This document shows, piece after piece, positions 3,710-54,420 of a stretch of DNA of 64,000 nt (the first letter of the stretch is position 1; each line of letters starts with the position of its first letter). The notes beneath the pieces are model-generated. The model was not told the origin of the DNA. It did not search any database and was given only the letters and a program-made list of their open reading frames with translations. The DNA lies in assembly GCA_964106915.2 (NCBI GenBank), contig OZ066916.1, one strand, 5' to 3'. The translations under genes and the position numbers were made by a program. Source of the DNA: Podarcis gaigeae. Its lineage: Eukaryota.

Positions 3710-5544
3710 GTTTAGCTGTTGAAGAGACAAGCTAGTCTTTGGTACAAATTTTAAAATTTAAATAAAAAAGCTTATCTCTTCAGCTACAGAAGTGATAGCT
3801 GTGCAGACTTCAAAGAATAGTAGGGTAATAAATAATAAATGGAACCCAGTGATGGTGGTTTGGGGAAACTGAATTCCACAGAAGGAAGCTTTTGAGCAAG
3901 GGGTGAGTGAGGAAGTCTATTGCAGGAAGTCTGGAGGGAGCCCTTCCTCTCTTGCTGTAAGTCGCAGAGGAGGAAAAATCCATTTTGATGAACAGAACCG
4001 TAATCTAGAGTTTACAAAAATAACAAAAGCATTGTGTAAATAAACCTTTCTAGCATTTCTGTGTTATGATCCTGAGAAAGAAAATAAGGTGACTGACAAA
4101 CAACAAACTGGAAATAGATCTTATTGGTGGGAATATATTGCACTCCTAGAATTAGCAGTGATATTGTCAGTCTACTACTAGAAGGATAATGTATTTGCCT
4201 CCATAGTGCTTTGGAATATAGTGGAAACATTGCAGATCACAATTAGAATCATTTTGGCTGTAAGGTTGGGTGGGTGGGGGTTTTCAAACAGTGTTCTGTC
4301 AAGCATCTTATTAAACTTTTAAAAGTAAGAAAGAAAGCATTTTCCACAAACTGGAATCAATGTATATACAATGTGTATACAAAACTTGGGTTTTTAGCAT
4401 ATAAGCAAGATAAAAGCTTTTGTTTTATATAGAAATCTCTGCAGTATGATGTACAGGTTTAAATAATCATTGCACTGCATTGCAGAGGGTTATTAATACA
4501 TTGCCCTGCACTTTGAGGAAGAAGTCAGAATGTCCTCTAGAAGATCCTGAGTTGACTGCAGTTCATTTATGGTTTGTTAAGATTCCTGAAGTAGGAAACT
4601 TAATGCTTGCAAATCATTAAATTGAGACCACAATATCCCCCTCGGTCATTTATAGTTGATTTGCATTTAGGAAATGTATATGTTTTTGAAAGCATGGTTA
4701 ATTTTTATGGCAAAGGGGCACTCATAACCATACATTTCTGAACATTTCAAACAGACAGCTTTTTAAAATAATAATTAAAATAATAATAATAGAGACTTGC
4801 AGCAATAAACAAAATTGATATCCCATTTGGACAAAATAATATTCTCTTTATAGGATATCTTTTATAAATGTCCACATCTTCCATTTCTTGCTCTGGCAAT
4901 TCTATGAATTTTCAGAGGTCGTTACATTGGATAGTAGTAAAGGTAACTTTACTGTAGATTAAAAAGAAAACTTTATTTCGATGTTGCAATAAACCATGTC
5001 TATGTGGGAATTCCACATGCTGCCAGTTAAGCTTTTAATGTAAAAACAAAACTACATGAACCGATACTCGGTGTGCTAAACCTCTGGTCCACAGTGTACC
5101 ACATGGTAATGGAGATCAGCATAGTGACAGAGTTGCTTGCAGGGTTTAGACCTGCTGAATGAGCACACTTGAGCCCTGACACGTACCTTGCAGAAAGATG
5201 TCCACAGAACAGTTTGAGACAACGTCCTTTATGTGACCATTGTGCATTGTTTGAAATGTAGTTTTTCAATTTCTCTGATTCATATCTTGTATCAGCTGGA
5301 GAGTTTCTAAGGTCAGTCGCCTAAACCTGAAGTGATGTCATCAGTCATGAGGCTCTATCAGGATCAGGCATGAATTGGCAGGCTCAGACAGGTGAGGCGG
5401 ATGAAGGAGAATTGGGAAGGGGTGTTGTAGAAACTGGGGTTGGATGGTGGAAGTTATCTTGCTACTGTGGAACAGGAAGCAAGGAATGCTAGCTCTCCCT
5501 ATGTCCTTCAGACAGAGAGGAGAGCCTCATAGGAGACTAGAGAA

Positions 5545-28175: not shown

Positions 28176-28330
28176 NNNNNNNNNNNNNNNNNNNNNNNNN
28201 NNNNNNNNNNNNNNNNNNNNNNNNNNNNNNNNNNNNNNNNNNNNNNNNNNNNNNNNNNNNNNNNNNNNNNNNNNNNNNNNNNNNNNNNNNNNNNNNNNNN
28301 NNNNNNNNNNNNNNNNNNNNNNNNNNNNNN
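28176..28330. other. Assembly gap (155 N)
   Basis: Run of N. Confidence 1.
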
Positions 28331-48195: not shown

Positions 48196-51100
48196 TTTTT
48201 TATTATTATTATTCTTAACATTATGCCTTAATGCTGACAAAGTTATAATAGGGCTGCCTGTATTGGTAGTGTACATTGTAGTGTGTATATTTTAACTATC
48301 ATGTAGTGAGAAATTTAAAGTGGCTAGTTTTGCACTGTCAAGTTATTGACTGGCTTTACGTTGCAGGCAGATTTCTGGCTAGCTTTTCCTTGCATCCATT
48401 CTTAACAGTGTCCCCTATGCTGAAATCATGGCAATGATTTTATGAGAGCCAGTCATGTAGGCCAGAATTCTGATTTTGTTCTAGGAATGGCATTAATGCT
48501 GAAAAGGAAGGGGGAGGCGGGACAGACGGACTGGCATATTATGTGAAATGTGCAGTGAAATAACAGTGAAAGATAAAAAAAGAGTACTCTCAGGTTTACT
48601 TACTTAAAGGACTGCACATATATTTTCATCAAGTGAGGTATGAAATACTGTGATTGGACTGAAGCTTATTGTTGTATTGTCACTCAACTCCAATAGCGTT
48701 AAGATTCCCTCCTTATGTTTCCACAGCCCACTTTTCCAAGTAGGTTTGATAAATAAAATGTGCACTTGTGGTACAGACCAAAATGGAATCTGTGGGATCA
48801 AGCAGCAAAGCACCTTTCTCCAATTCAAGCCTGCAGGGTAGCTGGAACTCCCTGTTTTGGAAACAATTTCCTGACACTAGTAATTCAAACCTATACATTA
48901 CTGAACACAAACTAGAGATGGTTCAGTCCATTTTAGCTTAAAGGGATCCCCCTCCCCCATTTGTTTAAGTTTGTATCCTTTTATTTCAATACACTACATT
49001 CCTTTTTGTCTCCCTTTTATCACATGAAAGTAGTAAGTAGCCCTAATCAGATGTTTAGTACCCATAAATGCCAAACATACGAAGGAACACTGAGATAGCA
49101 CAAGCCATTATCGCCATCTAAATACCGACACACATGCTGGCCATGTCTTGGCATCCGTCTGAATAGGTCCATCTGTATGCAGGTATGGCTCCCTCCACAG
49201 AGCTGATTGATAGCTGTTCCTGGGGCAGGAGCTGTTCACTTGCACATCCATGCTCACATAGCCCAACCTTTTAGACTGATGCTTATCACACATGGGCTGG
49301 GAGAACATGAAAAGCACCCATGTCTGTACATTCTCAATAACCCCTTCACAGATTTAGTACGAGCAGGTACCAAATACCTTAATAGAGTTGACTCTTACCG
49401 TTTTTGCTGCTGTGTATTCTTGTCATCTTATTTTTTGCATAGCTTTAGCTTGGAAGCAGTAGTGTTTTTACTTGAAAAAAAATACAGTGTGCAAACACAC
49501 ACTGTTTAACCAGTTTTCAGATGAAGGACATATAACAGTGATATAAATGAAATTGAAATGCATTTTGCCAAGGGTGGGAGTTCTCTCATTTCCACTTAAA
49601 AGCACTCCACTTTGCTCTAGCACAAGGCACAGTAGCCCTCATACATTTTAGAATGTCAACAAGTTGTTTTTACAGGCATTTTTTGACAAAATCCCACAAG
49701 TGATGAGTGTATATTCCATTCTACAAAAATTGATATTGAAAGCTTTGTGGTTTCTGAATTTATCTGAACTTCATGCAACAAATGCTTTTTAATTTTTGAA
49801 ATACTACTTCAAGAATGTTGGGATTTTATTTCTGGTTTACCACGATCTCAAAATTTCGTATACCAGGCTGTCCCAGTTACATAGAAGAGCTGACTGCAAT
49901 TCAAGCTATGTCTAGTAAAATAGATTATGACTAATGCAAGTATATATTAAATAAGCAAACTTCAATTTTTATTTAATAAAAATGTAAAATAATGTAAATA
50001 ACAGTAAAAGAAATTAATTTGAGTGCATTAACAATAGGCACATTTAGGTTCCTTTGTAACGACAGAGAAGTTTGTTAATCTGGTAAAATAATGAGATATA
50101 TGCTCAATGGAACACATAGCTTTGTTAGGAATAAGCAATAATATGTTTGGGGTACTTTCTGCTTTGCTGGCAGAAAAGCAAACAGCTGAATTCACAAGTA
50201 GTTGAGCCCTGGAAAATGTTTCCATAAAAACAAGGGCAATACTGGTTTTCAATTCTCAAATGAGCTGCCAACCTTGTATCTAGTTCATGCTTTGTAGGGA
50301 GCTTGACTTACGCTGTCTAACATCTTCAGTTGCCATTTCCCCAAAAATACCAGTTAGAAAGAAAAGTACTCCCAACAAAAGAGCAGATCTAGATTTTATA
50401 AATAACTACAGTTCCTCATGTAAAACTTATGTAGCCAAAATAGCAAAAGAATGCCATTGTTAACCTGGTTTGAACTTGGTAAATGAACAGTTGGAAATAC
50501 CATTTATCTTTTTTTCCTGAAGACACTAATATGTATTCCTTCATATTGTAACACAGAAGGTTAAATTCACTTTGTTGCACAGCCTTCTCAAATGAGCAGA
50601 GCAAATTAAATATATAAATTTTCTGCAGCCTCAGGACAATACAAATGTGAATGGAATCAAAAGCAGCTGTTTCTTGGTACACAAAAGGCGAGTTCATTTG
50701 AGGGTCTTCTTCAAGACCACCACCCACATTGTAGGTTAGTGGGTCCATTTTACCGTCTGAACTCTCCTGAGCACATTACTTCATTTATGGCTGTGGGTAG
50801 CACAAAAGTGTAATGTGAGGGCACAGTAGGGAAATAGCAGCCATTACTAAAACTGGAACAATAGAGCCAGAGAATTAAGGGTGCAGCAGAGGAGTCAATG
50901 ACATGTGCTGCAAATTAGATAGGTCATAGCAGACTCATCACATTTTTATTAGTTTAAAGGTGGATTTCTCTTTTCTTTTTAAGAGTCATACCTCTCTTTT
51001 GCAACTTTTTGTAAAGAACATTTGAAAGGAGGTTTATAATTTTTAACCATGTAACATTGTTTGTAAAATACTCTGGTTTTAATGTATTTCTGTACTATTT

Positions 51101-51440
51101 GTTGATAGTGTCAGCATGATTCTACTGGACAGGGTTCACAATGAAGTCGTTCTGGATGGATTCACACTGCGTATTTCCTAATTTCTGCAAATCATTTGTT
51201 AGCATTTTATTCTACTGGTTAGAGACAACCTCTACATTGCACTTTTTTCATGTAAGGAGTCTTTTTTTAAGGAAGATGTAAAAAATGTATGTACATGTAG
51301 AATATTCTTCAGTAAAGCTTTTTCTCATTTTGTTATGCTTAAAAGCTGAGTTTAAAGCATGCCAAACCTGAAAATATGTAAGTAATAGCTGCCTGGGGGG
51401 GGGGGGGAATAAATACTATTTGCAGCAAAATTGAAAAAGA
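48196..51440 (+). other. PLEKHG1: PLEKHG1 3' UTR (end inferred)
   Basis: About 3.2 kb of AT-rich sequence after the stop with no recognised interspersed repeat, ending near AATAAA. Confidence 0.6.
51408..51413 (+). terminator. Candidate PLEKHG1 polyadenylation signal AATAAA
   Basis: AATAAA after a G13 run, followed by GT/T-rich sequence. Alternative hexamers at 49975 (AATAAA) and 51461 (ATTAAA). Confidence 0.55.
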
Positions 51441-51983
51441 AAATGCAGTCTGTTTTGTTAATTAAATGTTTCACACTGTGCAGTGTACCAAGGGGATTCA
51501 CCCCTTTGCAACTTTTGCCACTGTCTCCTTTACTTGGCTTTTATCATTTACTGAATCAGCTGGGAAGGGCCAGCATTGGTGAATATATTAATATAAGATA
51601 CAGATCCAAAACAAAGAGTGTGTTCTAGTATAATGTATTACGGGGGTCACCCAGCTAAAGCCTGTGGGTGCCATGGTGAAGGCCTTCATTGGCACCCTGG
51701 GCAGAGGCTCGGGATTTGTGAGCTCTCATTTGGGGGGAAAGGGTAAGTCTTTAGCCCTCCAGGAAGAGGGGTGAAATATGAAGCAAAATATACAGCTATC
51801 CTTCTAAGCAATTGCTGTGAAATGAGCCAGCTTAGTAGGTTGCTTCTGCCCCTCGGTATTTTTAGTCAACAAGTGAAGTGAGAGCTGTGATTTGTTGTTC
51901 ATTTGTTCTGACACCGGGTATTAGCAATCTCTGGGGTCCTGAAGAGCTAGTGTAGAAATATCACTCTGGTTCATAGGCTAGGA

Positions 51984-52974
51984 CAGTGTTTTTCAACCTT
52001 TTTTGGGCAAAGGCACACTTGTTTCATGAAAAAAAATCACGAGGCACACCACCATTAGAAAATGTTAAAAAAATTAACTCTGTGCCTATATTGACTATAT
52101 ATAAAGTAATAATTACTTTACAGACCGCAGTAATCTCCTGGGTGTATAAGAGACTACCCTGGTCCTGAGCTGTATGACGAGACATAATATCAATTTTTTC
52201 AAAAAAAACTTTCATTTTCTACCTCTTCTGGTCTAGAGGTGGACAAGAAACCCTTAGCCTCTCACTAAGGGCCAGGCGCTCTTGCCATTGGAGGGCGAAC
52301 ACTCACTGGCGGAGAACCGAAAGGAAACAATTGGGGTCAACAAAGGAAGCTCGCCTCTGAGGGGAATGTCAAGAGCAGGCCTTTTCCCGGCCGCAGACTG
52401 CCCGGCCCTGGGCGGCCCCGGAGGCGCTGGGCCAGGCGCACTTACCGAGGAGCCGGCCCAGAAGGGGCAGCAGTTCTTAACTTGCGGGGAGCTGCTGAAG
52501 GACAGCGCCACAAAGCTTAGCGCCACCAGGCAGCAGCCCAGGATCAGCTGCAGCAGCTCCAGAGACAGCAGAGGGCGCGCCGGCAGCAGCCCTGGCCGAG
52601 ATGGCGGCGGCCTCCCCGCCCAGCGGCAGGCCCCACTGGGGGAGAGCACGGCCCAGGCCACCCAGAGCGGGACCATGGTGGCCTGGCGGGCGGCAGCGGC
52701 GCTGGGCCAGAGGTGGCGGGTCTGGGTGCCTCGGGCGCCGCCGAGAGCCGGGCCAGCGGACAGCACGAGCCCGGCAGCACCACCGGCAGAGACATGGGCG
52801 CCTCGCCCGCCACGCTGGAGGCAACAAGTGCGTGGTCTGGCGCCTGCCTAGTGGGCGAAAATTTGACATTTTTTTAAAAAAAAATCTTTTGAATTTTTCA
52901 ATTTTTCCCACGACACACCAGGCAACATCTCATGGCACACTAGTGTGCCGCGGAACAGTGGTTGAAAAACACTG
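51984..52974. mobile_element. Non-autonomous hAT (Charlie/Buster-like) DNA transposon carrying a captured gene fragment (Pack-hAT)
   Basis: TIRs CAGTGTTTTTCAACC / GGTTGAAAAACACTG; perfect 8-bp TSD GGCTAGGA at 51976-83 and 52975-82; subterminal GGCACAC motifs and GGCACACTAGTGTGCC palindrome. Confidence 0.93.
52446..52795 (-). pseudogene. ENTREP1: Captured, frameshifted copy of ENTREP1 (FAM189A2) first coding exon
   Basis: Frame A gives MSLPVVLPGSCCPLARLS... and frame B gives RPLLSLELLQLILGCCLVALSFVALSFSSSPQVKNCCPFWAGSS, followed by donor GTAAGT. This matches the recalled ENTREP1 N-terminus and CD20-like TM1. ATG to donor is 350 nt, not 3n. Confidence 0.8.
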
Positions 52975-53589
52975 GGCTAGGAGTAGCACAGGTTCTCCCA
53001 GAGCAGAAAAATGAACATAGTATCCATGTAGCAGTAGGACACAGTGGTTTAGGATGACAAGAAACACCCCTGACTTGGGACCACTGGTACTGAGGCACAG
53101 ACTGAGGCACCAATAAAAGCTGTCAAAACATGGGCAGATGCTTTTGTGAGCTCTAGCAGCAGCTTTTATCAAGAAAGCATCATTTCCCCTCCTTGCCAAA
53201 GGGCTTCTTCAAAACTCTGCAGCAGCCTTTCTTCCTACTAATTGGTGCCAAGTGTTGTCCTGGACCCCCTGTAACCAGTGGTGGGTGGCCACCATTTCAA
53301 ATTTCATTTCCCATAATGCCCCAGAAAAGGCACAACGCAGAGGTACTGTGGGAAAAGCCAGAGTCTGCTGCCAGCTGGGCGAGATGCTCTTCAAATTCAA
53401 AGGAAAATTCTGCAAGCAGCAGCAGCAGCAGACGCTGAAGCGGTGGTTGGCAGTTTTAATTACAAAATATTGCTTCTCGTCCGTCTTTTCCCGTTTCCTT
53501 TGAAGTAAGGCCAGGTGCTTTCCGTGGGATTTATTTCCAAGTTAGCAAAGGCTAGCATGCCCCCCCTATGTTCATTATAAGGCCAATGT

Positions 53590-54420
53590 TTCCAAGTGAC
53601 GACGTTTGCTCAGGGGAAGCGAGGGCCATGGCACTTGCCCTGGGTCCGCTGGAGAGGGCAACCCGCTCGCTCACCACCTGAGGGGAGCTTTGCGGACGAG
53701 TCTATGCCCGGGGGTGCAAGCGAGGCGCCGAGGCTTCGCTGGGCCCCCGCCTTTCGCAGGCATTTCTTGGAGCCGGCCACGCTTTGCCCGTCGGGCGCCC
53801 CTCCCCGCGCCACGTCCTTTCCCAGAAGCCAACAACTCCGCCTCCCCGCCAGGGAGCCCCGGCAGCAGCAGCAGCAGCAACAGTTTCCCTCGCGTCCTTC
53901 CTCTCGCAGCGATGAGGCTCTCTGTCCTCCGTCGCCTGGCGTGGAGACCGGCGACACCGGCTGCAGCCAAGCACGGCGGGAAGAAGGTGGGCTGCGGGGC
54001 TCTGCCTCTGCTGCGCCCTGGAAGCGGCTACCCAGGCGCGCTCCTGCTCCCCCGGGGCATCTGCGGCACGTGGGGCTGCCTGGACAAGCAGCGAGGGTCC
54101 GGCAGCGGAGGGCTACGGGGCTCGGCGGCCAGGTAAGCGGACGGTTCCCCTTTTGCAGACCGTGGGGGTGGGAAGTGCCTGGTCCCGCCGCCAGCGCTTC
54201 TAGTTCGTAGCCGGCACTCGGCCCCTCGGCTCCACGTGGGGAGGAGGGCTCCGCCTTCGGGCTGGCTGTTGTGTCTGATGCAATAACGCAGATGCATTGC
54301 GGAGGAGAAGGGGGGGAAGGAGGGAGTGGCGTCTCCGGCAGCCAATCCGCTTCGAAGAAGCGGGAAGCGCGGCTTCTTATTGGCCCCGTGAGCGCCTGCT
54401 TTCACTCACCCGCTTCCAGA
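53590..54420. promoter_or_regulatory. MTHFD1L: CpG island / promoter of MTHFD1L
   Basis: Very GC- and CpG-rich, spans exon 1. GC-box-like CCCCGCC/CTCCGCC motifs; CCAAT at about 53583 and 54342; ATTGG at 54379; (CAG)n at 53863-53883. Confidence 0.85.
53912..54132 (+). CDS. MTHFD1L: MTHFD1L exon 1 (mitochondrial targeting peptide)
   Basis: MRLSVLRRLAWRPATPAAAKHGG..., Arg-rich and acid-poor presequence; AG|GTAAGC donor in phase 2, matching exon 2. Confidence 0.85.

Follow-up and report, generated by a model that had tools for sequence, protein, structure and literature searches.

A hAT-type element of a wall lizard that very probably captured the 5′ end of ENTREP1/FAM189A2 and later moved as a unit

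How does the first exon of a host gene come to lie between the ends of a DNA transposon? This question is raised by a 64-kb stretch of Podarcis gaigeae DNA (contig OZ066916.1, 64,000 nucleotides, hereafter called the window), in which a 991-bp element at positions 51984–52974 encloses sequence resembling exon 1 of ENTREP1/FAM189A2. A first-pass annotation had taken this element for a Pack-hAT, that is a hAT transposon with a captured piece of an unlinked gene. Our analysis makes it very probable that the element is indeed a Pack-hAT, whose internal region was replaced by ~720 bp of the ENTREP1/FAM189A2 5′ end and which later moved to its present site as a unit.

The ends proposed for the element were re-read in the sequence and agree with the description given before. 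A perfect 15-bp terminal inverted repeat (TIR), CAGTGTTTTTCAACC, occupies 51984–51998 and its reverse complement 52960–52974. Immediately outside, identical copies of an 8-bp target site duplication (TSD), GGCTAGGA, with TA at its centre, are found at 51976–51983 and 52975–52982. With up to 2 mismatches allowed, the window holds no further match to the TIR, and no second copy of any part of the element was found in it. The terminus begins with CAGTG, in accordance with the YARNG motif by which hAT TIRs are defined (PMC3014272), and the TSD conforms to the nnnTAnnn / NTCTAGAN target preference of Charlie-/Buster-like hATs. None of the open reading frames (ORFs) of the element encodes a transposase: all are cargo frames or short AT-rich ORFs, and the only Pfam family of note among them is CD20, under the curated threshold. 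GC content is 0.63–0.80 over 52350–52850 against 0.29–0.40 in the arms. The AT-rich stretch at 52119–52230, assigned to an arm in the anatomy first proposed, is captured intron.

To dissect the element we used the ENTREP1 loci of P. raffonei (L003), P. lilfordi (L004) and Lacerta agilis (L005), referred to as the parents, and the Logan contigs of four public runs placed on 51000–54000. The runs are an independent study of the source species (X2), one run of species D (X6), one of species G (X13) and an RNA-like run of G (X15). The resulting features are as follows, with the strand where one was assigned:

51976–51983: left TSD copy, GGCTAGGA; exact direct repeat with 52975–52982, single copy at the empty site of species D
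51984–52110, plus strand: left arm, part of an abundant non-autonomous hAT-type element; TIR at 51984–51998, high depth, loose contig ends at 51984
52111–52118: arm/cargo junction filler of 8 nt; inverted copy of the adjacent arm, palindrome 52102–52120
52119–52250, minus strand: cargo block B, a 132-bp piece from a more distal part of ENTREP1 intron 1; 94–95% identity to the Podarcis parents
52251–52256: filler of 6 nt at the internal deletion, where ~1.17–1.28 kb of parental intron 1 is missing; spanned by a species G contig
52257–52445, minus strand: intron part of cargo block A, the first ~190 bp of intron 1 starting from GTAAGT; aligned to the parents
52446–52795, minus strand: ENTREP1 exon-1 coding sequence, 350 nt, frameshifted, ending at the donor TCG|GT; found by tblastn in two frames
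52796–52835, minus strand: ENTREP1 5′ leader, 40 nt; breakpoint 52835|52836, where other arm copies diverge (52835)
52836–52974, plus strand: right arm of the hAT-type element; TIR at 52960–52974, high depth, loose contig ends at 52974
52975–52982: right TSD copy, GGCTAGGA

The identity of the cargo was established from its coding part. The minus strand has an ATG at 52795, from which MSLPVVLPGSCCP... is translated, and a second frame ends ...SSSPQVKNCCPFWAGSS just before the donor TCG|GTAAGT (52446/52445), which gives 350 nt from ATG to donor. As the exon is broken into two reading frames, each piece served as a query by itself, and the pieces were never joined. Using phmmer against 1.84 billion representatives, the 107-residue piece that reaches the donor gave 103 hits at E≤1e-3. 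Of the ten best hits, all of which were looked up, seven have a gene name, in each case ENTREP1/FAM189A2 (of frogs, bats, fish, a turtle or a bird). Among the full-length hits that were scanned, every one has a complete CD20-like domain; the window piece covers profile positions 4–45 of Pfam CD20, under the curated cut-off. Compared to turtle ENTREP1, the ATG frame is identical at 15/17 positions (residues 1–17) and the second frame at 51/69 (residues 56–120). Read-through ORFs of the collection all go on as “GSS|VS/VR”, and the exon boundary was therefore placed there.

Of 34 sequences compared, 20 are named squamate and turtle orthologues and the others unnamed contig ORFs; the closest of the named proteins is ENTREP1 of Podarcis raffonei (88% and 90–92% in the two frames), from which it follows that the window comes from Podarcis or a very close relative. 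With this 597-residue protein as query, tblastn against the window recovered residues 1–50 and 56–122, in different frames. A search for near-identical ORFs of other copies in a collection of 5.8 billion proteins returned none (the best match covers 32–43% of the ORF), a result that is uninformative since the contigs concerned measure merely 110–140 bp. The phmmer hits and the P. raffonei match bear out the earlier reading of the core as ENTREP1/FAM189A2 exon 1. They equally agree with its claim that this is not the genuine gene: the real ENTREP1 gene measures ~32 kb, and the genuine locus was ruled out here because no exon past residue 122 is present in the 64 kb. A complete CD20-like domain, ENTREP_C and an open frame, as found in a functional ENTREP1/CD20-like gene, are all missing.

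Alignment to the parents defines the captured stretch. From 52835 down to 52257 (block A), the cargo is colinear with the parental leader, start codon, whole exon-1 coding sequence, donor and first ~190 bp of intron 1; in L003 the alignment begins at 4970, 31 nt ahead of the ATG. Block B (52250–52119) has 94–95% identity to L003 6673–6803 and L004 10885–11015 and can be aligned to Lacerta agilis too. In all three lacertid parents the two blocks are separated by 1.17–1.28 kb of intron 1, so that ~1.18 kb has been deleted within the element, where 6 nt of filler (52251–52256) now stand. A longer templated filler of 28 nt, deduced from the P. raffonei alignment, was rejected: 22 of these nucleotides are true intron, present in P. 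lilfordi, which leaves 6 nt. Intron-derived cargo thus amounts to 327 bp (52119–52445) in two blocks, instead of the ~200 bp of intron-like sequence first noted, in a cargo of ~720 bp. As the alignment runs through the donor into parental intron 1, it upholds the proposal of capture at the DNA level and not by retroposition. A processed retrocopy is ruled out by the retained donor, the 327 bp of intron, the absence of poly(A) and the TIR ends.

The outer breakpoints are 52835|52836 and 52119|52118, arm homology stopping at 52110 and parent homology at 52119; the arm/cargo breakpoints lie 127 and 139 nt inside the element. In the parents, the right breakpoint falls 18 nt downstream of a TATA-like TTAAAG, and the GC boxes upstream were left uncaptured. 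Because the core promoter and GC boxes lie outside the captured stretch, the cargo is probably promoter-less.

As for its source, the copy retains intron segments lost by P. raffonei or by P. lilfordi and therefore keeps the ancestral Podarcis state. Since the first part of the intron shows no alignment to Lacerta, the source was a Podarcis-type gene. The parent gene of the source species itself is seen as contigs only (X2 record 17). The P0001 and Gekko kuhli loci align over the coding exon alone (71–72% identity) and are too distant for breakpoints. The parents themselves vary: different 20–50-bp segments are gone from the GC-rich first 200 bp of intron 1 in L003 and L004, and the length of exon 1 (363, 348 and 366 nt) varies by in-frame slippage in GCC repeats. 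In addition, the P. lilfordi ENTREP1 model P0268 (L004 5001–9229) predicts an 818-residue protein with an unrelated N-terminal extension of ~240 residues, which results from translating the 5′ leader up to the true start MSLPVV and looks like an annotation artefact.

The arms, for their part, belong to a different kind of sequence. In three species, summed word depth over 51984–52110 and ~52880–52974 is 2×10^4 to 3×10^5 for a single-copy baseline of 9–40; summed contig depth is not copy number, and arm depth was taken only as an order of thousands. The arms are part of a repeat at ~10^3 times single-copy depth. Loose contig ends with poorly agreeing continuations (0.45–0.49) are found exactly at 51984 and 52974; these loose ends and their differing flanks indicate that many copies terminate at exactly those bases. 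Other family members diverge after 52108–52110 and before 52835, subfamilies also before 52882–52934, so that what lies between these points belongs to the 51984–52974 element alone. The flank consensus of the other copies is CTCTAGAC or CTCTAAAG (agreement 0.45–0.49) and fits NTCTAGAN, the target preference tabulated, together with NYYTARRN, for Charlie- and SPIN-like hATs of Anolis (PMC3014272). The terminus CAGTGTTTTTCAACCT agrees at 15 of 16 positions with the published SPIN-like Anolis terminus CAGTGKTTCTCAACCT (PMC3014272). A literature search for the exact TIR and for hAT capture in Podarcis returned no earlier description.

Did the element form where it now stands, or did it arrive complete? 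The first-pass annotation held that the unit, or its precursor, had transposed here and suggested looking in related lizards for an empty site with a single GGCTAGGA; such a site was found in both species D and species G, where the whole element is missing at the orthologous position. A 5,978-bp contig of species D runs directly from 51975 to 52975, 8 letters fitting both sides: a clean empty site with one GGCTAGGA. In species G, a contig joins 51955 to 52975 with TTCATA (equal to 51970–51975) in between, again with one GGCTAGGA. The latter species also has a 14-bp indel at 51956–51969, 7 nt left of where the element inserted; this indel is unrelated and is followed by the intact single GGCTAGGA. 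Divergence of the flanks is ~1.2% to D and ~3–4% to G.

The chimera nevertheless exists elsewhere in the same two species. D record 29 (52751–52883) crosses the cargo/arm junction 52835/52836 with 85 and 48 letters on its sides, and G record 4 (52179–52581) crosses the junction of the internal deletion. The undeleted parental arrangement of block B is found in G record 3 and X2 record 17. The chimera is thus present in at least three related Podarcis-like species. Because the site is empty in D and G yet junction contigs occur in both, the chimera is older than the species and moved as a unit. We conclude that capture and internal deletion took place before the source species separated from D and G, and that the copy at 51984–52974 was inserted as a whole unit, with its 8-bp TSD, after that separation. 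Relative to baseline, cargo depth is 3–9× in X2, ~0.3–3× in D and ~1× in G. This hints at a small cargo-bearing family that may have expanded in the source lineage.

The cargo is decaying. Its exon measures 350 nt and is without 10 nt present in all three lacertid parents, whose exons (363, 348 and 366 nt) are open. The missing 10 nt map near 52643–52660, where there is a short direct repeat; translation passes into another frame between “WSRSGWPGP” and “SPSGACRW” and meets a stop at 52544–52546, ahead of the donor. A frameshift after capture, already suspected from the ATG-to-donor length, is thus confirmed by the three parents. In an alignment of 547 columns, 26 substitutions are private to the copy, compared to 10 and 14 in the two Podarcis parents, and 14 of the 26 are CpG to TpG or CpA. 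About a third of the CpGs are lost, 45 remaining (observed/expected 0.66) versus 67 (0.86) in the P. raffonei parent. Read in the ancestral frame, private changes are 10 synonymous and 8 non-synonymous. Four of these changes (G>E, G>V, L>F and S>C) lie in the first transmembrane segment, at sites that are invariant in nearly all (at three sites, all) of the 20 named squamate and turtle orthologues. The intron branch of the copy is ~2%, like the parental branches, and its exon branch is several-fold longer, a pattern that fits a long unconstrained, probably methylated, life as transposon cargo. With a shifted frame, changes at invariant residues and ongoing loss of CpGs, the cargo is not a working ENTREP1 exon.

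Could it have acquired another role where it landed? The element lies in a short intergenic spacer, ~745 bp upstream of the first exon of a plus-strand gene, with the cargo antisense to that exon. Within a CpG island, position 53719 marks the start of a 4.2-kb transcript contig of species G, and a plus-strand ORF extends from an ATG at 53913 (MRLSVLRRLAWRP...) to a donor at 54133. The start of this ORF (MRLSVLRRLAWRPATPAAAKHGGKK...) looks like a mitochondrial presequence, which would suit MTHFD1L. A Pfam scan of the long ORFs around the element, made to name the neighbouring genes, found nothing; according to the first-pass annotation the neighbours would be PLEKHG1 and MTHFD1L. On the other side, an AT-rich stretch transcribed in species G (~50825–51395), with AATAAA at 51409, looks like the 3′ end of a plus-strand gene. 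A poly-G run at 51396–51408, the length of which varies between species, ends the transcribed stretch, which is probably the 3′ untranslated region (UTR) of the upstream plus-strand gene. Downstream of the element, species D is without 181 bp at 53042–53224 and has TGAGGAA instead. The source species has this stretch and species G contigs (52975–53167 and 53154–53565) cover most of it, so that this is probably a D-specific deletion. Far from the element, a run of 155 N at 28176–28330 is an assembly gap or a masked stretch.

In this setting the cargo might serve as a promoter-proximal CpG island, as an antisense or upstream transcript start, or as a source of small RNAs against ENTREP1. We consider such co-option unlikely. 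The donor GTAAGT is intact, the cargo is still CpG-rich (observed/expected 0.66) and the first exon of the host gene is 745 bp away, all of which would suit it. Against these points, the cargo begins just 31 nt before the parental ATG and 18 nt past TTAAAG, with the core promoter and GC boxes left behind; the loss of CpGs suggests methylation, the coding frame is disrupted, and in the species for which RNA data exist the site is empty.

The remaining alternatives concern the way in which cargo and arms came together. A miniature inverted-repeat transposable element (MITE) might have been resident at this site and have had an internal double-strand break patched with ENTREP1 sequence. Such in-place gap filling is the majority mechanism for single-copy animal Pack-TIRs (PMC8277862), and breakpoints within the element and short fillers are what it would leave. 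It is made highly improbable by species D and G, which are without the whole element here and have one clean TSD copy, and which carry the same chimeric or deletion junctions elsewhere. In the framework of Tan et al., the absence of the whole transposable element (TE) from D and G, rather than the presence of a bare TE, supports membership of the transposition-dependent Pack-TIR class. The other properties of a Pack-TIR are found as well: an interior derived from a non-TE host gene, a parental copy without flanking TE and no coding capacity for a transposase.

No better placed is composite mobilisation, in which ENTREP1 exon 1 was excised from the parent locus together with two MITEs, or with a single MITE and a cryptic end, on either side of it. 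No trace of arm sequence was found within the 42–49 kb around ENTREP1 of P. raffonei, P. lilfordi and L. agilis. Inner TIR copies beside the cargo are likewise missing, the two terminal matches being the only ones with ≤2 mismatches, and the cargo meets the arms 127 and 139 nt from the ends of the element, at points past which other family members have different sequence. We therefore give this scenario very little credit. Least probable of all is an assembly artefact joining unrelated reads through a high-copy repeat: extremely repetitive arms and a core of 70–80% GC are both hard to assemble, but the TSD is perfect, the X2 flank contigs enter the TIRs (by 25 and 29 nt) with no empty-site joint in X2, and chimeric junctions exist in contigs of two other species. 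A stop just inside the TIRs is what is expected of k=31 contigs that enter a high-copy repeat.

Capture followed by transposition as a unit is thus the reading that we retain, and several points weigh against it. The 25 and 29 letters by which the X2 contigs enter the TIRs fall short of the 31-letter bridging rule, and what this run of the source species supports independently is the flanks and outermost ends of the element. Several window-specific letters of the cargo are absent from X2 contigs, which is no proof because Logan contigs drop minor variants. The copy number of perhaps 3–8 in the source species comes from summed contig depth, which is not copy number, and further copies with the cargo are putative, known from depth and junction contigs.

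Within these bounds, gene DNA was copied directly into the inside of a hAT element, and the resulting chimera then transposed. Capture would be best explained by template switching during DNA synthesis across the hAT element, because the breakpoints are inside the element, the junctions carry fillers of 6 and 8 nt (one of them an inverted copy of its neighbour), a second jump occurred in the intron and no MITE was found at the parent loci. The synthesis involved may have been repair of a double-strand gap after excision, or it may have followed replication-fork stalling (FoSTeST, PMC8277862); judged from the junctions, the odds between these variants are about even. Later movement would have relied on hAT transposase supplied in trans.

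How does this element compare to known cases? Of the 370 Pack-TIRs that Tan et al. (2021) listed in 100 animal genomes, 208 sit on hAT elements (PMC8277862), and vertebrate Pack-hATs are thus better documented than the first-pass annotation, which called Pack-type elements sparsely documented in vertebrates, had assumed. Only four are multicopy, three in Xenopus tropicalis and one in alligator, and GC-rich cargo is favoured (PMC8277862). In animals, Pack-type capture is mostly an in-place repair accident, and four families demonstrably moved afterwards (PMC8277862). The element described here adds a lacertid case to the rarer, mobile class of Pack-TIRs; capture as such was already known in vertebrates. 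It is a well-resolved vertebrate mobile case, with exact breakpoints, fillers informative for template switching and a parent gene sequenced in several sister species, and the empty sites in close relatives separate an old capture from a young insertion.

It is possible, though we hold it only tentatively, that the element is one of many independent hAT captures of CpG-island first exons in wall lizards. If so, Podarcis would harbour a still-active vertebrate analogue of rice Pack-MULEs, one that systematically places copies of gene 5′ ends near the promoters of other genes. In that case the present cargo, having landed 745 bp upstream of a host first exon, could give rise to new first exons or to silencing cross-talk with its parent. 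Should other first-exon cargos be confirmed, wall lizards would offer a natural system for the shuffling of promoters and first exons by DNA transposons in amniotes.

By its arms, the element resembles the SPIN/Charlie-like hAT MITEs of squamates (Novick et al. 2011, PMC3014272), which have a similar terminal sequence, 8-bp TSDs with central TA, NTCTAGAN-like flanks and thousands of short non-autonomous copies; this likeness is one of termini, compared to a published table, and does not establish SPIN membership itself. By its cargo, it is closest to the multicopy Pack-hATs of vertebrates. Pack-hAT-N8_XT of Xenopus tropicalis, with 291 bp of CAPSL 5′ UTR (PMC8277862), is likewise a non-autonomous hAT with TIRs and 8-bp TSDs. 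In contrast to this UTR-only cargo, that of the lizard element comprises a complete first coding exon with donor and intron, and shows an internal 1.18-kb intron deletion. With the vertebrate multicopy Pack-hATs in general it shares a GC-rich 5′ fragment of a TE-unlinked parent, an orthologous site without the element in outgroups and contigs that suggest more than one location. It differs from them by its lacertid host and by clean empty sites in species ~1–4% diverged, the insertion being recent and the capture older.

More distant systems share part of this scheme. In rice Pack-MULEs and plant Pack-CACTA elements, the interior of a TIR element is also replaced by host fragments that include introns, GC-rich 5′ ends are favoured, mobilisation occurs in trans and most cargos are pseudogenised. 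Unlike these, the lizard element is a hAT and not a Mutator or CACTA element, carries one gene fragment where multi-gene chimeras are frequent, and has a far lower copy number. Helitron capture in vespertilionid bats (PMC4224331) similarly shows a DNA transposon spreading host promoters and first exons in a vertebrate genome. Bat Helitrons, however, are rolling-circle elements without TIRs or TSDs that capture by read-through (PMC4224331), whereas the lizard element is of the cut-and-paste type.

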